Positions 4,709 through 64,000 of a DNA stretch of 64,000 nucleotides are shown one piece after another. The notes below the pieces were generated by a model. It worked only from the letters and a program-made list of their open reading frames with translations. It made no database searches and had not been told where the DNA came from. The stretch spans positions 175,832,001-175,896,000 of the forward strand of contig OZ038378.1 in assembly GCA_964036045.1 (NCBI GenBank), given 5' to 3'. The translations under genes were made by a program, and so were the position numbers. This DNA comes from Eutreptiella sp. 'Long Island Sound 2002' (lineage: Eukaryota; Protista; Euglenida). Position 1 is the stretch's first letter, and the number at the start of each line of letters is the position of its first letter.

Positions 4709-6334
4709 TAGCTACGTAACAATTGCGCATCCACTGTGTCCGCCAAAACCCTCCACAACCACCAAACACCCTTTCGAAAGCCCCCTCCCATACATGGATG
4801 CCATCAATAGAATTAGACCCACTTTCCACCCAAAAACCCCGGTAAATTGTGGAAAACACCCAAAACTAGGCGCGGTGCACACCGTGTGAACAACATTCCT
4901 TGTACCACATCCACGCCCTATAGAACTACCTTGCAGTCAATCAGGCCACAAGCTAGACGGCCATTACGGGGCTGTGTGCCATCCAAAGCGAAGGCTGCGG
5001 AATCCAAACACTCCGTGGTCCAACTCCACCTTTCTTTTTGTAATGTGGCCAATGTATAGATGTACATATTGAGATCAAGGCAGTCTAGCGCTCCCAACGA
5101 CAGCACGTGCCGAGTGGAAGCAACAGTGAAACACATCAACATAGACAGACAAATGCAAAAATGTATGCCCCCCATTCAAAGCTTTGCAAGGGGTTACCAC
5201 ACGTGAGAGTCATTGCGTATTGCACAGGCAGTGAATCCCTAATACAATTGGCAAAATGCTGGAACATGTTGTGTACCACTAATGGGTAACACCTAGTGAT
5301 CTGGAACCCTCTGCCCTATGTTACGTTTCCCGCATGAGTGGTGGTGAGCACCCTCCAAACTCCACCGTCTTGGGAAAAACTTTGTGTGGAGCTCGCTAGT
5401 GACACCAAGGGGCAGAAGCAGCACTTGTGAGCAGCAAGTGTCCCACATTCTTCTAGAAAAATCCATTTGTCCCCCAGCACCTCCTTACCTCACACACTCT
5501 GGGTGTTTCTCTTACCTAGGCCCTGCTATGGGGCCTAGGCAGTGATTCGCAATGGGGATGTGTCCCAGCAAGGCCCCTGCTCCATGTGCTGCTACCACCA
5601 ACGTCAAGCCCCCCCCCCCCCCGCTCTTGGGGGGTGGTCCATCTATTCCTTGAAGTACCACCGTGTACTCCCAACACCACATCTGCTGCCGCTAATCCCG
5701 TTAGCACGGTCCCCATGTGAGCTCTATGTTCCTCCTGTTCCTCCATACCTGGCAATTGCACAATGCACCAATGGAGGAAACGGCCTTTCTTGATAGGTGC
5801 GGGACCTCATAGCCCTAGTGTGGCGTGTCTAACGATCGCCATCACCTTGTGGCTTTTGCTGGCCCCAAACATCAATTCCATGCTATGGTTGCCAATTGAG
5901 TCCAATCATGCCATATATACAAACATCCATATGTACAAACAGCCGTTGATCCAACCACGCAACCCAACCTTCTCCCTCGGCCTTACCCCTGCTTACAGAC
6001 TTTGGCTCCGCACCATAAGGTCCACTGAGTCCAATGGTCCAATGGTGTGTGACAACACTCCAAGTCCTAGCCGAGCGCCTGCCTTTGTTCTTTCTATGCA
6101 TAGTGTAGTTCTCCATGACGTGACCTCAACACAATTTGAGAGATTCTTGTTTTTTTTCATCAAATAGGCCAAATGTTAAAGTGCTGGGGCCTCAAGGGCA
6201 AGTTCGTGTTGGGCATAATACAGATTTCAGCAGTGCTAGGGTTTGCACACAAATCGCCGCTCTTGCTTGGACCCCCATAGGTTCCCGTAGGTGGCTTCCT
6301 GCAGGGTCATGGTGTTGCTGCTGGATCACACATA

Positions 6335-7088
6335 GGGGGCGTTGTCGCACGGTGCGCGCACGGTGCGTGCACGGTGCGCGCACGGTTCAATGTTTTTGGG
6401 ATGGTTGCCCAACTTGTACCCCGTTGAATGGCCCCCATAGAAACACACCCAGGGTCCTGATTTTTGCACCTTGCAGTCCATACTGGCATACCAAGATTCT
6501 TCAATTTTTAGTCTGATGCTTGGCACAGGTTCCAGGGTCCTATTTTCTGCACCCTGCAGCCCCTATTGGCGTACCGGGAACTTTCTTTTTGAATCTGATG
6601 CTTGTCACAGGTTCCAGGCTCCCAATTTCTGCACCTTGCACGCACCTCCGTAACAAACCATGCACAGGCGACAACACAGGCGGGGGGCTTCTAGCTCATG
6701 ATCATCAATTCTAGGGGCTTCAGCTTCCACTTCAAGTAATTGGGGCTCCAGCAAAGCGTCCATCGGCGCCTCATGGTGCACAGGTTGGGGGGAATCGGGG
6801 CTCTCAGCAGTCACAATTGCAAACTCCAACCGCTCCTCGGGTGCATGCTCGTACAAGAACTCTTCACCACCCAATTCGTACCGAATAGAGACGCAACACC
6901 CACCTCTTGGAGAAGGGCCAACGGCAGTGGCCGACACCCTATCCTTGTTGGAGCGGTGGTAGTACACAAGCAGTCCGGCGACAAGCCAGGGCAGCTCAGA
7001 TTCAGGCATTGTGGATCTGGTGGACACAGAATACGCAAAAGGACGCACGGTGCGTGCACGGTGCGCGCACGGTTCAGGCAACACCCCC
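6335..7088. mobile_element. PIF/Harbinger-like non-autonomous element (754 bp)
   Basis: GGGGGCGTTGTC ... GGCAACACCCCC with TSD ATA (6332-6334, 7089-7091). GCACGGTGCG(C/T) repeats sit at both ends. Confidence 0.8.
6605..7009 (-). CDS. Element-borne 134-aa ORF: SH3/Tudor-like N-terminus, acidic linker, Cys-rich tail
   Basis: MPESELPWLVAGLLVYYHRSNKDRVSATAVG...ERLEFAI aligns by eye with the ORF at 7370-7690. It lies wholly inside element 6335-7088. Confidence 0.5.
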   Translation of the reverse strand: MPESELPWLVAGLLVYYHRSNKDRVSATAVGPSPRGGCCVSIRYELGGEEFLYEHAPEERLEFAIVTAESPDSPQPVHHEAPMDALLEPQLLEVEAEAPRIDDHELEAPRLCCRLCMVCYGGACKVQKLGAWNL

Positions 7089-15565: not shown

Positions 15566-16732
15566 CCAAATAATCGTGGAAACCTCGCACCACACGTACT
15601 ATGGAGGCCCCACGTTGCCCAAATGGCAAAAGGAGAAGGAGGAATAGGGGCAAGTATATTCCAAGCATCTCAAGAGGAAAGAACAAGAAGGATTTGCATG
15701 GTTGGCTCATTAGTCACTTGTAATGTAACCTCAATTGTGTTGGAACATTGCTTGATGACAATTCACTGCCACACTTCTTAGGAGAAAACTGGCAAGCGCA
15801 CAGTGTTTGGTGACACAAGGGAGTTTCTCTCTTTGCGATTGCACAGTACGGATTCACACCACCATCCTGTTGCTCCCTCTTGCTTAGCAAACACAGGAAG
15901 AACCAGAATTCCATGGGTCTCAAGCTGCACGTGGGAATGCTTGGTTCAACTTGGATCATCATCCGTGGAGTGCGTCATTCCATCCGTCTCAACCTGCACT
16001 TGGGAAGGCGTTTGGTCCCAACCATCACTTCTGAACTCGTCGTTCAACTGTAGTTCGCTTCCTCTTAGCGTCCTCTTCAACAAACAATCATTGATAAAGG
16101 AAGTCGTCTCACCCTGCTCGTCCCTCTGACCTTCCACAAAAGTACACAACTGTTGCTGAAGAACTCTTGAGGTTGAAAAATGACGACATTGTTTATTACC
16201 ACAAATTGCGAAACCTCTGAAAGTTCCTGTACTGCTTTTGGAATGTGTCGATACTGTCAACAATTTTATTACGGATCTGAGGCACAAAGAATTTGTTCTT
16301 AATTCAACACTATTGGAGGTCGCTGAATGGATCATGGGTTGTTCATTTGCAGATAGGGGCCCCATGGGCACATTCGTGTACAAGCACTTACTGACACACC
16401 ATAAAGGACCAACCCCCGCAAAATTAAACGAAATTAAAAGCACTTCCACAGCAGCGACAGCACGTGCGATAGACCTGGGGCGTGGCGCACACGCGCAACA
16501 GCGCAACGCGGTGACGGTATGCAGACTGCGGCCCTAGCAGACTGCGAAATGCACGAACGCACGAACAGGCGACACGCGCATTTACGACGGCCGAAAAAAC
16601 GACTGCAACTGATCTACTGCAACTGATCTTCTGCTAAAAGGCGACAAGGATGTTTTGAACCGTTCTGCAGCCCAAATTTATAAAATAATTGCATTATTTT
16701 ATCGCCAGATAAGGCAACGATACCTTGCTGGT

Positions 16733-19700
16733 AAATCCACTCCCTCCTACTCATTTTCAACTCCCTCCTACTCATTTTCAACTCCCCCCTGCTCATTTTC
16801 AACTCCCTCCAAGTGAAAATCCACTCCCTCCTACTCATTTTCAACTCCCCCCTGCTCATTTTCAACTCCCTCCAAGTCAAAATCCACTCCCTCCTACTCA
16901 TTTTCAACTCCCTCCTACTCATTTTCAACTCCCTCCAAGTGAAAATCCACTCCCTCCTACTCATTTTCAACTCCCCCCTGCTCATTTTCAACCCCCTCCA
17001 AGTCAAAATCCACTCCCTCCTACTCATTTTCAACTCCCCCCTGCTCATTTTCAACTCCCTCCAAGTGAAAATCCACTCCCTCCTACTCATTTTCAACTCC
17101 CCCCTGCTCATTTTCAACTCCCTCCAAGTGAAAATCCACTCCCTCCTACTCATTTTCAACTCCCTCCTACTTATTTTCAACTCCCCCCTGCTCATTTTCA
17201 ACTCCCTCCAAGTGAAAATCCACTCCCTCCTACTCATTTTCAACTCCCTCCTGCTCATTTTCAACTCCCTCCAAGTGAAAATCCACTCCCTCCTACTCAT
17301 TTTCAACCCCCCCCTGCTCATTTTCAACTCCCTCCAAGTCAAAATCCACTCCCTCCTACTCATTTTCAACTCCCTCCTACTCATTTTCAACCCCCCCCTG
17401 CTCATTTTCAACTCCCTCCAAGTGAAAATCCACTCCCTCCTACTCATTTTCAACTCCCTCCTACTCATTTTCAACTCTCCCCTGCTCATTTTCAACTCCC
17501 TCCAAGTCAAAATCCACTCCCCCCTACTCATTTTCAACTCCCCCCTGCTCATTTTCAACTCCCTGCAAGTGAAAATCCACTCTCTCCTACTCATTTTCAA
17601 CTCCCTCCTACTCATTTTCAACTCCCCCCTGCTCATTTTCAACTCCCTCCAAGTGAAAATCCACTCCCTCCTACTCATTTTCAACTCCCTCCTACTCATT
17701 TTCAACTCCCCCCTGCTCATTTTCAACTCCCTCCAAATGAAAATCCACTCCCTCCTACTCATTTTCAACTCCCCCCTGCTCATTTTCAACCCCCTCCAAG
17801 TCAAAATCCACTCCCTGCTACTCATTTTCAACTCCCTCCTACTCATTTTCAACTTCCCCCTGCTCATTTTCAACTCCCTCCAAGTCAAAATCCACTCCCT
17901 CCTACTCATTTTCAACTCCCCCCTGCTCATTTTCAACTCCCTCCAAGTGAAAATCCACTCCCTCCTACTCATTTTCAACTCCCCCCTGCTCATTTTCAAT
18001 TCCCTCCAAGTCAAAATCCACTCCCTCCTACTCATTTTCAACTCCCTCCTACTCATTTTCAACTCCCCCCTGCTCATTTTCAACTCCCTCCAAGTGAAAA
18101 TCCACTCCCCCCTACTCATTTTCAACTCCCTCCTACTCATTTTCAACTCCCCCCTGCTCATTTTCAACTCCCTCCAAGTCAAAATCCACTCCCTCCTACT
18201 CATTTTCAACTCCCCCCTGCTCATTTTCAACTCCCTCCAAGTGAAAATCCACTCCCTCCTACTCATTTTCAACTCCCTGCTGCTCATTTTCAACTCCCCC
18301 CTGCTCATTTTCAACCCCCTCCAAGTGAAAATCCACTCCCCTCTGCTCATTTTCAACTCCCCCCTGCTCATTTTCAACTCCCTCCAAGTGAAAATCCACT
18401 CCCTCCTACTCATTTTCAACTCTCCCCTGCTCATTTTCAACTCCCTCCAAGTCAAAATCCACTCCCCCCTACTCATTTTCAACTCCCTGCTGCTCATTTT
18501 CAACCCCCTCCAAGTGAAAATCCACTCCCTCCTACTCATTTTCAACTCCCCCCTGCTCATTTTCAACTCCCTCCAAGTGAAAATCCACTCCCTCCTACTC
18601 ATTTTCAACTCTCCCCTGCTCATTTTCAACTCCCTCCAAGTCAAAATCCACTCCCTCCTACTCATTTTCAACTCCCCCCTGCTCATTTTCAACTCCCTCC
18701 AAGTGAAAATCCACTCTCTCCTACTCATTTTCAACTCCCTGCTGCTCATTTTCAACTCCCCCCTGCTCATTTTCAACTCCCTCCAAGTGAAAATCCACTC
18801 CCTCCTACTCATTTTCAACTCCCTCCTACTCATTTTCAACTCCCCCCTGCTCATTTTCAACTCCCTCCAAGTGAAAATCCACTCCCTCCTACTCATTTTC
18901 AACTCCCCCCTGCTCATTTTTAATCCTCTCGAAGTCAAAATCCACTCCCTCCTACTCATTTTCAACTCCCTCCTACTCATTTTCAACTCTCCCCTGCTCA
19001 TTTTCAACTCCCTCCAAGTCAAAATCCAAAACCTCCTACTCATTTTCAACTCCCCCCTGCTCATTTTCAACTCCCTCCAAGTGAAAATCCACTCCCTCCT
19101 ACTCATTTTCAACTCCTCCCTGCTCATTTTCAACTCCCTCCAAGTCAAAATCCACTCCCTCCTACTCATTTTCAACTCCCTCCTACTCATTTTCAACTCC
19201 CCCCTGCTCATTTTCAACTCCCTCCAAGTGAAAATCCACTCCCTCCTACTCATTTTCAACTCCCTCCTACTCATTTTCAACTCCCCCCTGCTCATTTTCA
19301 ACTCCCTCCAAGTCAAAATCCACTCCCTCCTACTCATTTTCAACTCCCCCCTGCTCATTTTCAACTCCCTCCAAGTGAAAATCCACTCCCTCCTACTCAT
19401 TTTCAACTCCCTGCTGCTCATTTTCAACTCCCCCCTGCTCATTTTCAACCCCCTCCAAGTGAAAATCCACTCCCCCCTGCTCATTTTCAACTCCCTACTG
19501 CTCATTTTCAACTCCCTCCAAGTGAAAATCCACTCCCTCCTACTCATTTTCAACTCCCTGCTGCTCATTTTCAACTCCCCCCTGCTCATTTTCAACCCCC
19601 TCCAAGTCAAAATCCACTCCCTCCTACTCATTTTCAACTCTCCCCTGCTCATTTTCAACTCCCTCCAAGTGAAAATCCACTCCCTCCTACTCATTTTCAA

Positions 19701-20386
19701 CTCCCTGCTGCTCATTTTCAACTCCCTCCAAGTCAAAATCCACTCCCTCCTACTCATTTTCAACTCCCTCCTACTAATTTTCAACTCCCCCCTGCTCATT
19801 TTCAACTCCCTCCAAGTGAAAATCCACTCCCTCCTACTCATTTTCAACTCCCTCCTACTCATTTTCAACTCCCTCCTGCTCATTTTCAACTCCCTCCAAG
19901 TCAAAATCCACTCCCTCCTACTCATTTTCAACTCCCTCCTGCTCATTTTCAACTCCCTCCAAGTGAAAATCCACTCCCTCCTACTCATTTTCAACTCCCT
20001 GCTGCTCATTTTCAACTCCCCCCTGCTCATTTTCAACCCCCTCCAAGTGAAAATCCACTTCCCCTCGCTCATTTTCAACTCCCCCCTGCTCATTTTCAAC
20101 TCCCTCCAAGTGAAAATCCACTCCCTCCTACTCATTTTCAACTCCCTGCTGCTCATTTTCAACTCTCCCCTGCTCATTTTCAACCCCCTCTAAGTGAAAA
20201 TCCACTCCCCCCTGCTCATTTTCAACTCCCTACTGCTCATTTTCAACTCCCTCCAAGTGAAAATCCACTCCCCCCTGCTCATTTTCATCTCCCTGCTGCT
20301 CATTTTCAACTCCCCCCTGCTCATTTTCAACTCCCTCCAAGTGAAAATCCACTCCCTCCTACTCATTTTCAACTCCCTCCTACTCA
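16733..20386. repeat. 21-bp satellite, about 174 units, three main variants
   Basis: A=CCCTCCTACTCATTTTCAACT, B=CCCCCCTGCTCATTTTCAACT, C=CCCTCCAAGTGAAAATCCACT, arranged mostly as C-A-B or C-A-A-B. Confidence 0.97.
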
Positions 20387-60289: not shown

Positions 60290-61975
60290 GCTTAGGATTA
60301 GGGCCGGAGAGGGTCTGGGACTCTAAATGGTGCATGCCAGTGAACGTGCCAACACGTGGCGTGCCTGCGGGAGCACGTGGTTGCTGAGGAAAACGGGCCT
60401 GGCCCTGAGCTGTGACGGCCTTACCATAAACACGGTTACCCCCATCCCCTATGCCCCCTTCACAGTAGAACGAGGGCGTGGTACTGACGACATGCTCATG
60501 CATGCCACGCTATGCCCTACGAAAACCACGAGGTCACGGCCCCGCACACCAAATTGCTCTCCAAAATCCTGAGTGCCTTGTGATCACTTCGCCCAGTGAT
60601 CCGCTGGGTGCGCAGGGCAAGAACGTAAACAGAAGGCACTGCAGAGCTCCATTACGTTGGGACCCATGCCACAACAAGTCAGACACGACTGGGACACGGC
60701 GTGCCGCCGCCTGCAAGATAGGGCGGCTGGTCCGTAACGATCTGTCTCTCCAGGATTTGCAGCGCTTGGCCCCTGACCCGCATCCGCCGGTGCCACGTAG
60801 ACCCCCCCCCCCCCCTTGAGGGACATCATGGCCCTGCATGACTAACTGCAGTCAACGGACGGAGCACGCGGACACACTTGAGTTGGAATGCCTATATCAG
60901 TGGTGCCTGTCCATGGGAAAAGCATGGCTCGATTGTCCCAAGGACATATATAAGTGGATGAAGAATGATTATCAGGCGCCCCCTGGTCATGCTAAAGGAC
61001 CCAGAGACCAGCGGGCCCACAACCAATGTGGACTGCATGGATGAAATTCTGCATTAATCCTGGGACAAGGTCATGCGTAAATACACACACTCACCCGAGC
61101 CAGATCTAGATGTTTTTGTGCAGAAATACCGGAATTTCATTGAAAGCAACACAGACATGGCCGCCACCCCCCTCGTAGGCGCTAGACTGCGCAAGCGCGT
61201 CCGCAAAATGGGGATACACACAGCCATAGGGTTGGACGGTCGAGGCCTGCCAAATGCACTGCTTGACATGCTGGCACAGCTACTGACACGTATTGAATCC
61301 ACAGGGCTGTGGCCCCGGCTGTTAGCCCGCGGCTTCATTTCTTTAATTCCAAAAGGGGAGGGCATGCCTCCTATGTAGCAGCGGCCACTCTCGGTTCTAT
61401 CACAACTATACCGCGTGTGGGCCGGAGTAAGACTAAGAGGATTGCATGGTGTGGCAAGAAAGTGGGTACACCCCCACACCTATGGTTTCCGGGAAAAGCG
61501 AGGAGCCACGGACGCATCAGCACTCATTGCTCTGCTTATTGAGTTGCACACCGTCATGCATGCTGTGCTCACTGGTTTCGGGTTAGACGACGTTAAGTGC
61601 TTTGATTTAATACCCCCAAAGGTGGTGCTCCGCGTCGCCCTCGAGCAGGGCATGCACCCGGGCACCCACAGAGCGTTGTCTGGAATGTATACGCAATTGA
61701 CCCGTTGTTTCAAAATAATGAGACGTCTATACTCTTTTTTCGCCGCAACCAATGGCATCCTACAAGGATGCCCACTGAGTGTCATCCTGATTAATCTCAT
61801 GACAAGCATTTGGAAGAAAATCCCGGATGCACAGTCACATTCACAGGCCATCCGTATATCCTCTTTACGGCTACCGCCAGGGGGAAAACCCAGGGAAGCA
61901 TTAGATTTCATTCTTACCGCGCTCGGCTATGCCGACGACACATACGGCGTAGCCGCAGGACAACACACTGTCTAG
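60290..61975 (+). pseudogene. Non-LTR retrotransposon (LINE) reverse transcriptase pseudogene
   Basis: AIGLDG, WP..L..GFISLIPKG, RPLSVLSQLYRVWAGVR, YGFR, LDDVKCFD, NGILQGCPLS and GYADD motifs. In-frame TAG at 61376-61378 and truncation after YADD. The 5' boundary is approximate. Confidence 0.88.
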
Positions 61976-62529
61976 CCCGCCGTGTATCCGATCTAGTAGA
62001 GCGGATGCTTTGCCAATACATTTTAAGAATGAGGGGGCTAGAGGCCACGTTGTCTGTGGTGCGCATGGTACAGACCGATCTCCTGTTTGTGTGGTAGTGC
62101 ATGTCCGCAAACTGTCACGGCCGCCTAGCTATTAGCCGTGTGATTTGCTGCGCATGCAATTGTTCCCTGATGTTATGCTTGACCAGTTTGAAATCCCCAG
62201 TCAGCTAGAGGGCGTCCGTTGTGCCTGGTATCTGTCACTCCCACCACCCCGAAAGCAAGGAAGAGCTAAGTGGGTACGGAGTCGGGTGTGTTACAAAAAA
62301 ACGCGTTTTTTCCCCCCCGCTTTTTTGGCCGTTTTTGGCCGCGGGTTGGTGTTTTTTCATGTTTTTTGGTGTTTTTTTTGTTTTTTCATGGTGGTATTAG
62401 GTACAAACGCATCTTGTGGTACCAAGGAAGCATTGTTTTTTTGAATATTTTTGGCATTTGTTGTTTCTCCGACGTCTTCTGGTAGAGTGTTTTTTTATTT
62501 TTTTCCCTCATGCATGACGTACCAAGTAG

Positions 62530-62900
62530 TTCTACAATGGGGGACACACATATATGGGAGATGTGGGATGTGGGATGTTGGGTCCGTATGTCATGGCATG
62601 AACATGTGCAAATGTGAATGCAAATCTATGATGACATGGCAAATAGAGTTGCAATGGGGGCCACACATATATTGCAAATCTATGATGACATGGCAAATAG
62701 AGTTGCAATGGGGGCCACACATATATAGGAGATGTGGGATTTGGGATGTTACGTCCATATGTCATGGCATGTATACGTGCAATCTGTGATCTCATAGCAG
62801 ATAGAGGTGCTATGGAGGTCACAAAAAGAAAGTAGATGGGATGTGGGATCTGGGATGTCTGGTATGGGATGTGGGACGTAGGATGTGGGATGTGCATTGC
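62530..62900. repeat. Subterminal repeats upstream of the hAT ORF (54-bp duplication and GATGTGG runs)
   Basis: GCAAATCTATGATGACATGGCAAATAGAGTTGCAATGGGGGCCACACATATA occurs twice, with multiple GGGATGTG copies. Confidence 0.7.
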
Positions 62901-62945
62901 AAATACGTAGGGCATGTTCGCTTCTTGCTAGCGTATTTTGTGTTG

Positions 62946-64000
62946 ATGCCTGGCGTCTGGGTGAAGAAGGACGTCGAGGGCGCCAAGTGGTCCTTTCATA
63001 AATCCGCCTCGGCTGCCGCTCGTTACCTGGGAGAGCAGGGCGTCAAGTTGCATGACGCCCAAGTCAGCCGGGAGGCCAAGCGCAATGGTGCCCGCGACGG
63101 TTGGCGTTTCACTCCCGACTTGAACGCGGTAGCCCCCCGTAATGCCACCGTTACCGCAAAACCTCGCGCAGCACCATCCATCCCCAACGGTTTTGCCAGT
63201 GCCAGCCGCGTTTGCGGTGCTTGCGATAGTGAGTTTGGAGGGCACCTTAGGAAATGCGTTTCCTGTGGCAAGCAGACCCATGAACTATGTGGTACTGTTG
63301 TTGTACAACACAAGTTCCATTGCTACATGTGCGTGTGCCTAGTCTGTCACTGTCCTTTGACAGGCCCTGTGGTAAAGTGTGCCCAATGCACGCGCACCGC
63401 TCATGGACATTGCACAACCGCGGTTGGTGACACAGTTCATTGCAAGGCTTGCGCCTCTCCACCACCACCACCACCAAACCGAGGCCAGCGGTGCCTGTTT
63501 CGCCAGCAGTGGCAAAAGGGGCGGCCGTGGTTGAAATACATCAACGACCTCATGCACTGCGCTGCTTGTCGGATGTACCCCCAGCCTGGTGGCTCCCCTG
63601 AATGGGCCCAGGGTACCAACAACTTCCGCGCCTCAGCCGTGAAGAAGCATGAGCGCTCCGGTCCGCACCATGTTGCACTGGCAATGTGGGTATCCAATGG
63701 TCAGAAGTCCTCTGCCTTAGGGACCTTGCCGCCGCACGTACGCGATGGGGTCTTGACGGCGTTCCGAGCGGTGTACCAAGGGGAGAAGAGCGGGGGTTCC
63801 TTGCGGGTCTTTCCTGGGGATGTGTCTATGATCGAGCTCTCTAGTGGCAATGTCCTTCCGGGCTACCGCTCCCGGTTCTCTGCCCGTGGCATTCTTGCAG
63901 CCATAGCAGTGCCTTTCCGCAACACCCAAGGCACCATCATCCAGAGCGCCGAGTACTTGGCTCTTGCTTCGAATTCAGCCACGGACAGGGCCGCCCACAA
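62946..64000 (+). CDS. hAT-superfamily transposase (ZNF862/TTF type), 5' part, running off the window; N-terminal NUMOD1-like HTH plus two PHD fingers
   Basis: Manual translation gives 351 stop-free codons from ATG 62946. TTF-type finger FRQQWQKGRPWLKY...MHCAAC...WAQG...F...AVKKHERSGPH, two C4HC3 fingers, and YLALASNSATDRA at the first-catalytic-Asp motif. Confidence 0.8.
   Translation, partial: MPGVWVKKDVEGAKWSFHKSASAAARYLGEQGVKLHDAQVSREAKRNGARDGWRFTPDLNAVAPRNATVTAKPRAAPSIPNGFASASRVCGACDSEFGGHLRKCVSCGKQTHELCGTVVVQHKFHCYMCVCLVCHCPLTGPVVKCAQCTRTAHGHCTTAVGDTVHCKACASPPPPPPNRGQRCLFRQQWQKGRPWLKYINDLMHCAACRMYPQPGGSPEWAQGTNNFRASAVKKHERSGPHHVALAMWVSNGQKSSALGTLPPHVRDGVLTAFRAVYQGEKSGGSLRVFPGDVSMIELSSGNVLPGYRSRFSARGILAAIAVPFRNTQGTIIQSAEYLALASNSATDRAAH

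Follow-up and report, generated by a model that had tools for sequence, protein, structure and literature searches.

A decayed ZNF862-like hAT transposon in a euglenid genome with a predicted homing-endonuclease-type helix-turn-helix and two PHD-like fingers ahead of its zinc finger

Few eukaryotic cut-and-paste transposons have been studied as well as hAT elements, whose transposases usually carry BED or TTF-type fingers as DNA-binding heads. An open frame in the genome of the euglenid Eutreptiella sp. 'Long Island Sound 2002' raises the question of what else such a head can hold. The frame lies at the end of a 64,000-nucleotide stretch of contig OZ038378.1 (NCBI GenBank assembly GCA_964036045.1, positions 175,832,001 to 175,896,000 of the forward strand), which we call the window. 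From the letters alone it had been predicted to encode a hAT transposase with a NUMOD1-like helix-turn-helix (HTH) module and tandem PHD fingers ahead of a TTF-type zinc finger, and with Asn at the expected first catalytic Asp. Here we analyze this frame, the element that contains it, and the related copies in the genome. The reading that we consider likely as a whole is that of a decayed, internally deleted, non-autonomous ZNF862-like hAT element, whose intact ancestor would have recognized its own ends through the HTH and used the PHD-like pair as a tether. The window copy matters only as a fossil. Its wider interest is that a clade with four or more families in a single euglenid genome appears to have gained, under purifying selection, both a tandem PHD-like pair and an HTH fold that is otherwise almost confined to phage homing endonucleases and chromatophore-targeted proteins of Paulinella.

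The element, its copies and its hAT identity

The frame that begins at ATG 62946 is free of stops to the end of the window at 64000 (351 codons), as originally predicted, and the coordinates proposed for the Cys-rich units, the poly-proline stretch and the Asn codon all proved exact on the translation. We fetched sequence covering the locus and its downstream side (L011, in which positions are window positions minus 60000). Beyond the window the transposase frame stops at window-equivalent 64478, for a total open frame of 510 codons, and the rest of the element was recovered to ~65063. The window copy is thus 2,808 bp long, from window position 62256 to ~65063. It has imperfect ~20-bp terminal inverted repeats (TIRs), with 15 of 20 positions matching between the 5' end and the reverse complement of the 3' end, and it is flanked by a perfect 8-bp target-site duplication (TSD), CCCGAAAG. 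Its features are as follows.

62248..62255, + strand: 5' copy of the 8-bp TSD, CCCGAAAG (identical 8-mers on either side of the element)
62256..62275, + strand: 5' TIR, CAAGGAAGAGCTAAGTGGGT (aligned 5' and 3' ends of 11 copies)
62276..62945, + strand: 5' subterminal and leader region, with GGTGT motifs in T runs, a ~75-bp duplicated unit and GGGATGTGGGAT repeats
62946..64000, + strand: transposase open reading frame (ORF), first 351 codons (translation)
62955..63113, + strand: predicted N-terminal HTH module, residues 4-56 (AlphaFold2 model and structure search)
63213..63332, + strand: Cys-rich unit 1, C90-C129, a predicted C4HC3 PHD-like cross-brace finger (ligand pattern, structural matches)
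63336..63452, + strand: Cys-rich unit 2, C131-C169, likewise C4HC3 (ligand pattern, structural matches)
63456..63473, + strand: poly-proline hinge, P171-P176 (translation)
63525..63692, + strand: zf-C17orf113 zinc finger, residues 194-249 (Pfam PF25431)
63693..64000, + strand: hAT RNase-H-like catalytic core, from its start to the first-Asp block (homology to ZNF862-like hAT transposases)
63972..63974, + strand: AAT, Asn343, inside LASNSATD (comparison of copies)
L011 5044-5063, outside the window: 3' TIR (end alignment across 11 copies)
Window-equivalent 65064-65071, outside the window: 3' copy of the TSD, CCCGAAAG (identical 8-mer)

The element belongs to a repeated family. At least 40 scored matches (141 candidates) to the 1,055-bp stretch, at 90-94% identity, are found on many chromosomes of the 2.28-Gb genome, and we compared the window copy with 14 other fetched copies. 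All copies coincide at their 5' end, ~690 bp upstream of the ATG, and at their 3' end, and their internal deletions differ in size; element lengths range from 2,067 to 5,261 bp. All 11 copies examined for it have perfect 8-bp TSDs. The ends are imperfect ~20-bp inverted repeats (CAAGCCTGAGCTAAGTGGGT... / ...ACCCGTTTACCTCATCCTTG), and the termini, CAAGC/CAAGG...CCTTG, match the YARNG-type terminus that is the rule for hAT elements. No target-site consensus was evident among the 11 TSDs and their flanks, a very small sample. Frameshifts or stops interrupt most copies, and among 84 scored candidates only L018, the longest copy, has kept the C-terminal part. L018 itself carries a frameshift and a stop, and lacks ~80 residues of the insertion domain relative to P0013, a metagenome protein with a complete C-terminal half. 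The near relatives in databases all come from ENA assembly ERZ25074135. P0004, which is among them, does not differ from the L018 ORF, so this assembly represents the same species.

Pfam assigned one domain to the whole ORF of the window copy. The zf-C17orf113 finger (PF25431) matched residues 194-249 at 38.8 bits, above the gathering cut-off of 29.5 (E 8.6e-10), which bears out the predicted TTF-type finger. Longer copies also gave zf-C17orf113 alone, with no PHD, NUMOD1 or hAT domain, and phmmer found no match between a single core sequence and the PDB sequences. With P0004 as the query, an exhaustive HMMER search found 1,100 proteins at E <=1e-3 and 271 at <=1e-10. The long relatives among them (24-32% core identity, E 1e-25 to 1e-14) combine zf-C17orf113 with DUF4371 and Dimer_Tnp_hAT, and the ones that carry a name are sequences of Saccoglossus, Branchiostoma and a pipefish, annotated as 'zinc finger protein 862-like'. 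Nearly invariant columns in an alignment of 24 proteins are D112 and D116 (D-x-S-T-D), D181 (D-G-A), H214/H218 (CxxH) and R280-W281, which correspond to the classical hAT blocks. The family profile built from 24 sequences matches the Hermes transposase (E 5.6e-8) through a C-terminal S..ER.FS block (VERGW in this family), which bears the catalytic Glu. P0004/L018, the only copy to keep the C-terminus, has no direct Pfam match to the dimerization domain PF05699; the relatives at 24-32% identity do pass PF05699, and the Hermes match of the family profile covers that same region. The window copy is without the dimerization domain, by deletion. Taken together, the core blocks, the Hermes profile match, the TIRs and the 8-bp TSDs make membership of the family in the hAT superfamily secure, as had been predicted, and its core places it on the ZNF862-like branch.

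Fold and conservation of the N-terminal modules

We modeled residues 1-60 with AlphaFold2 from a 10-sequence alignment. The model is a beta-beta-alpha-alpha-beta fold with a predicted local distance difference test score (pLDDT) of 81-88, in which strands at residues 4-8 and 16-18 are followed by helices at 21-30 and 37-45 and a strand at 53-56. Comparison with 48,161 PDB representative chains gave the following matches.

Rank 1: C-terminal HTH DNA-binding domain of I-HmuI, an HNH homing endonuclease (1u3e_M, 120-174), Z 6.0, 53 aa, 2.4 A, 23% identity
Rank 2: Paulinella DNA-binding protein sCTP-23166 (8b6e_B), Z 5.7, 50 aa, 2.2 A, 14% identity
Rank 14: DNA-binding domain of I-TevI (1t2t_A), Z 4.1, 43 aa, 2.2 A, 14% identity

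The Pfam name for the module of homing endonucleases is NUMOD1. I-HmuI, I-TevI and sCTP-23166 share one nearly unique DNA-binding fold, and the 8b6e structure has been described as a beta1-beta2-alpha1-alpha2-beta3 HTH fold (PMC10319021). The modeled topology of the euglenid module is identical to this one, and a Trp in the last strand of the sCTP protein has its counterpart in the module as well (GW.F). The difference lies in what the HTH is joined to: an HNH or GIY-YIG nuclease in I-HmuI and I-TevI, and a eukaryotic DDE transposase here. A fair statement is that residues 1-60 are predicted to have the homing-endonuclease HTH fold, though they are not a NUMOD1 member by sequence.

The Cys-rich region that follows contains two units with the ligand set and spacing of C4HC3 PHD fingers. 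Unit 1 reads C-x2-C-x10-C-x2-C-x4-H-x2-C-x10-C-x2-C; unit 2 is the same except for x9 in place of the last x10, and directly abuts unit 1 (C-x2-C-x-C-x2-C). Unit 2 is basic, with a charge of +2 in the window copy and +3 to +5 in sister families. An AlphaFold2 model of the tandem region (residues 86-173, nine sequences) has a mean pLDDT of 84 and a predicted template modeling score (pTM) of 0.65. Foldseek returned no match to this model at E <=1e-3. The highest-ranking hits were double or tandem PHD fingers, namely DPF3b (E 4e-3, probability 0.98), the double PHD fingers (DPF) of MOZ and MORF, and Ehd3 (probability 1.00, TM-score 0.59). VIA-align likewise placed the tandem PHD of Ehd3 first (Z 5.6, 87 of 88 residues), and its top 50 are nearly all PHD or FYVE fingers at Z 3-5.6. 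Taken singly, unit 1 matches the PHD fingers of ARID5, Pygo, MLL1, BPTF and ING2 (Z 3.5-4.8), and unit 2 matches FYVE/Rab-effector fingers of the same cross-brace superfamily (Z 5.0-5.6, root-mean-square deviation (rmsd) 1.6-2.3 A). The best structural match in the ESM Atlas is a plant cluster that is 100% PF00628 PHD (TM-score 0.60 over 84 residues). When isolated segments from nine members were scanned with Pfam, PHD was the family matched by most of them (six of nine, best E 2.5e-4), always below threshold. We also considered LIM domains and rejected them, as the LIM matches had low probability and an rmsd of 10-16 A, and the x4 that precedes the His is a PHD-like spacing.

Residues 90-169 are therefore predicted to form two abutting PHD-like cross-brace fingers, a fold class that the models favor, with sequences that fall short of Pfam PHD membership. 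Two abutting cross-brace fingers with C4HC3 ligand spacing, the arrangement predicted here, are found in the tandem or double PHD of Ehd3 (9vno), DPF3b (5i3l), MOZ/MORF DPF and NSD2/3 PHD-C5HCH. Compared with typical PHD fingers, the loops of the hAT units are much shorter (5-10 residues between ligands 6 and 7), and unit 2 is no less similar to FYVE/Rab-effector fingers than to PHD.

The modules recur in diverged relatives within the genome. The sister family L027 (~48% identical, 621-codon frame) begins with an HTH-like module, followed by a pair of C4HC3 units, a Pro-rich linker, the finger and the core, and the same order is seen in L028/P0074 and P0157 and partly in P0061, P0067 and P0138, at 30-39% identity to the window copy. 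Eight Cys are invariant across the sister families. Where the His ligand is missing, another metal ligand takes its place: Asp in unit 1 (P0061, P0157) or Cys in unit 2 (P0138, P0157). A Pro-rich or basic linker is present in the sister families, and the start codon is conserved (MPGVWV / MCPVWV / ...LPVWL). Because the modules keep the same order, with invariant Cys, in at least 40 copies and four diverged sister families, they are genuine parts of the transposase and not a chance pattern.

We estimated omega (the ratio of nonsynonymous to synonymous change) against the per-column majority of 15 copies, counting a substitution as shared when it occurs in at least two of them. For shared substitutions, which were fixed while master copies still replicated, omega is 0.17 in the HTH module, 0.57 in the Cys units, 0.38 in the region of the zf-C17orf113 finger and 0.22 in the catalytic core, all from small counts; for singleton substitutions it is 0.5-1.0. 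A protein kept working by purifying selection, with copies that later decayed neutrally, would leave this contrast.

Decay of the window copy and possible roles of the modules

Similarity between the window copy and longer copies breaks off at ~64301, the breakpoint of an internal deletion. Compared with L018, ~2.6 kb has been lost after residue ~452, which takes out the RW block, the insertion domain and the dimerization/catalytic-Glu region; the last 58 codons before the stop at 64478 are a read-through of the 31-bp minisatellite. Two further changes affect the part of the core that remains. Asn343 aligns with D112 of P0004, a column with at least 90% Asp among the 24 hAT proteins, which we take to be the first catalytic Asp of hAT; HMMER gave no direct alignment of this block to Hermes, and we infer the catalytic identity of the position. 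The site is GAT (Asp) in all 14 other copies and in five database copies, so that Asn343 reflects a G-to-A change confined to the window copy. The His of CxxH has become Gln (CAA at window-equivalent 64290-64292, L011 4290-4292, versus CAC/CAT in seven other copies), again a private change at an otherwise invariant residue. The Asn and Gln are secondary to the deletion. The original prediction was thus right that Asn is present and that the copy is inactive, but Asn is not the main cause of its death. With the core deleted after the CxxH block and with both private replacements, the window copy can make no active enzyme; it is a dead, internally deleted, non-autonomous derivative. Since both of its ends are retained, it could in principle still be moved by transposase supplied in trans.

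Two explanations would give this frame a history other than that of a decayed transposase gene. One, raised in the original prediction, is that the window copy is a domesticated gene in which the Asp-to-Asn change marks a new, non-catalytic host function. A 510-codon frame does survive, and Asn does stand in place of the first catalytic Asp. Against this, TIRs and a perfect TSD flank the copy, at least 40 similar copies exist, owing to the ~2.6-kb deletion the final 58 codons translate a minisatellite out of context, both the Asn and the Gln of CxxH are private changes, and the singleton substitutions of the family are near neutral. These findings effectively refute domestication, to which we give almost no credence. 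The other explanation is transduplication, in which the HTH and finger region would be a captured fragment of a host gene, carried along with no role in transposition. Capture of host fragments is common among DNA transposons, and the fusion was not found in relatives outside this genome; yet in at least four families, no more than 30-39% identical, the modules are read in frame from a conserved start, their zinc ligands do not vary apart from the exchanges noted above, and purifying selection on the HTH appears as strong as on the core (omega 0.17 versus 0.22). We regard transduplication as very improbable.

We return, then, to a working transposase as the source of the modules. As the sequences show, the intact ancestor was an element of at least 5.3 kb that encoded its transposase in a single ORF, in the order predicted HTH, two abutting C4HC3 fingers with a predicted tandem-PHD-like fold, Pro-rich hinge, zf-C17orf113 (TTF-type) finger and hAT core. 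This core comprised a DDE/RNase-H-like domain that held the CxxH and RW blocks, an insertion domain of alpha helices and a C-terminal dimerization region with the catalytic Glu, and transposition produced 8-bp target duplications. The HTH may have recognized subterminal repeats of the element itself. GGTGT/ACACC in T or A runs occurs six to eight times in the terminal 200 + 200 bp, versus ~0.9 times in shuffled sequence, and these motifs at both ends, together with the GGGATGTGGGAT repeats of the leader, are candidate binding sites. The PHD-like pair could have served as a second nucleic-acid or chromatin tether. It would more probably contact DNA or nucleosomes in general than methylated lysine, given the basic character of unit 2 and the lack of an aromatic cage in either unit.

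Several observations weigh against this reading. The original prediction had named a NUMOD1-like HTH and PHD fingers, and what stood of both names is the fold: that of I-HmuI and I-TevI, found by an independent structure search, for the HTH, and C4HC3 spacing with a tandem-PHD-like model for the fingers. By sequence, neither name held. The isolated 60-residue module from four families matched neither NUMOD1 nor any other Pfam family at E <=10, and the whole-ORF scan found no NUMOD1 and no PHD; the PHD (PF00628) segment of the window copy scored 11.8 bits (E 0.26) versus a cut-off of 24. The structural Z-scores all lie at 4-6 and the best Foldseek E is 4e-3, modest values such as domains of 45-60 residues are expected to give; the structure tool itself warns that Z <8 may mean a common arrangement, and both AlphaFold2 models were built on shallow alignments of 9-10 sequences. 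The GGTGT motif was picked by eye, which inflates its enrichment statistic, and what the HTH and the fingers bind can only be inferred. Finally, we saw no fully intact copy of the window family, so the full-length architecture is assembled from several copies.

The role of the finger pair is where readings diverge most. If the tandem fingers read histone H3 tails, they would tether the transposase to particular chromatin states and so target its insertions. The best full-length structural matches are indeed histone readers (Ehd3 tandem PHD-H3K4me1, DPF3b, MOZ and MORF), the PHD cluster of the Atlas matches at a TM-score of 0.60, the C4HC3 ligand spacing is of PHD type, and chromatin readers fused to integrases or recombinases have precedents in chromoviral chromodomains and the PHD of RAG2. 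In H3K4me3 readers, such as BPTF, ING2 and TAF3, a cage Trp lies two positions before the ligand His; readers of H3K4me0 of the AIRE/BHC80 type have an Asp between ligands 3 and 4. On inspection of the alignment, the residue two positions before the ligand His is aromatic in neither unit of any family (Q in unit 1 and T in unit 2 of the window copy; D/K/A/V and R/L/R/R, respectively, in sister families), and no unit has an Asp between ligands 3 and 4. The alignment thus argues against the two best-known modes of histone reading and makes chromatin reading a speculation. The short loops, the at least equal likeness of unit 2 to FYVE/Rab-effector fingers, and the 11 TSDs and flanks with no obvious target pattern (a tiny sample) also speak against it, and we consider histone reading unlikely. 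Still more doubtful is the larger claim that builds on it, namely a euglenid-specific hAT clade with an HTH, double PHD and TTF head in which the PHD fingers tether the transposase to a euglenozoan chromatin state, with intact members that may be active. A different role, which may well apply although we would not bet on it, is that the Cys-rich pair binds the transposon ends sequence-specifically or serves as an oligomerization module, with no chromatin reading. The cysteine-rich domain (CRD) of piggyBac is a PHD/RING/FYVE-type cross-brace finger that binds TGCGT in both ends and is required for transposition; DNA is also bound by PHD fingers in PHF6 and BRPF2 (PHD2) (PMC5861402). In this family, unit 2 is consistently basic (+2 to +5), and short repeated motifs occur at both ends. 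On the other hand, two putative DNA-binding modules, the HTH and zf-C17orf113, are already present, no motif has been linked to the fingers, and constraint outside the ligands is weaker (omega 0.57) than in the HTH, contrary to what one would expect of a surface that reads bases.

Relatives, novelty and neighboring sequence

The animal ZNF862-like hATs (XP_006822890.1 from Saccoglossus, XP_078666292.1 from Branchiostoma) have the same PF25431 finger at the head of the core and the same core blocks (D-x-S-T-D, D-G-A, CxxH, RW and S..ER.FS) at 24-32% identity. To this plan the euglenid clade adds ~190 residues, made up of the HTH, the two C4HC3 fingers and the Pro hinge. Hermes (PDB 2bw3, 4d1q, 6dww, 8edg) is a more distant member of the superfamily, with 8-bp TSDs and an aligned catalytic-Glu block. 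Its N-terminal DNA-binding domain is a BED finger, a role presumably taken in the euglenid element by zf-C17orf113 and the HTH. PHD fingers have been reported in the transposases of Rehavkus, which is related to Mutator-like elements (MULEs), and of Ginger1 (PMC6446971, PMC2836005). Rehavkus also has a minisatellite before its 3' TIR (PMC6446971), and the euglenid family carries its 31-bp array at the same place. The fingers of the piggyBac CRD, Rehavkus and Ginger1-9_HM are single, C-terminal and in unrelated superfamilies, whereas here they are tandem, N-terminal, and joined to an HTH in a hAT. A PHD finger on a transposase is thus not new, but a hAT with a tandem pair and a homing-endonuclease-type HTH is one that we did not find described.

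Searches beyond this genome gave no further case. None of 10 sampled ZNF862-like relatives has a PHD or HTH upstream of the finger. A metagenome scan with the N-terminal alignment produced 160 pattern matches, none of which was confirmed; a feature search of the ESM Atlas for the N-terminal architecture yielded no usable match; and word-based homolog searches, including one with the N-terminus alone, retrieved only copies from the assembly ERZ25074135 of the same species. The literature that we searched contains no description of a hAT with PHD fingers or of hAT elements in Euglena, although its coverage was incomplete and is not proof of absence. These results agree with the claim that the architecture was undescribed; its restriction to euglenids is provisional, as the search methods were of limited reach. 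Should the HTH recognize the element ends, it would represent a clean exchange of a module between two kinds of selfish nuclease. Should the fingers bind nucleosomes, the protein would be a natural chromatin-tethered DDE transposase, with a bearing on target-site selection and on the design of transposon tools. In either case the family adds to a very thin record of euglenid DNA transposons.

Sister copies at 43-50% identity are numerous in the genome, and some have uninterrupted frames of 829-863 aa. Examples are frames of 863 aa at C4:24124477-24125397 (+), 831 aa at C2:50531890-50532810 (-) and 829 aa at C4:151006182-151007222 (-). Judged by these frames, they are candidate autonomous elements that may be intact, may be active and may have the complete architecture. 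About 30 further sister hAT loci (~50% identical) have equal scores and a 561-aa frame; they lie at 6.6-12.2 Mb of C2 and on the unplaced contigs C735, C1044, C1132, C1159, C1168 and C1953. The cluster on C2 suggests either that a large segmental or tandem repeat includes a hAT copy or that the family went through a very recent local burst.

The non-coding parts of the element are rich in repeats. The 5' leader of the window copy holds, at 62621-62770, a tandem duplication of a ~75-bp unit (tgcaaatctatgatgacatggcaaatagagttgcaatggggg(c)cacacatata). GGGATGTGGGAT repeats flank this duplication just 5' of the ATG and produce a spurious in-frame ATG at 62841. We rejected that ATG as the start, since it lies inside the repeats, and the sister families begin at the equivalent of MPGVWV, a conservation of the start codon that rules it out. 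The 3' half of the element contains internal tandem repeats of 220 bp (x4.5) and 208 bp (x1.8) and the 31-bp minisatellite just inside the 3' end, located at 5211-6190, 6170-6545 and 6998-7147 of L018 and at ~4303-4650 of L011 in the window copy.

Directly 5' of the hAT copy, the window contains a reverse-transcriptase-like ORF with a YADD motif (61415-61975, L011 1415-1975). L018 shows the same situation: a reverse-transcriptase-like ORF (YADD) occupies 808-2415, and the hAT is inserted at the extreme end of this 535-aa frame. These ORFs directly 5' of hAT copies indicate that the hAT elements are nested in DNA rich in long interspersed nuclear elements (LINEs). Elsewhere in the window, 16001-20000 has extreme GC skew (-0.56 and -0.82) at ~47% GC, which points to a strongly strand-asymmetric repeat block. 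Genome-wide, the 24-nt sequence of the Euglena-type spliced leader (SL) has ~7,480 exact matches, dispersed over both strands, and the reversed control has 0, in line with a euglenid genome. This count is far above that expected for an SL-RNA gene array alone, and the matches could represent retroposed SL-bearing sequences.

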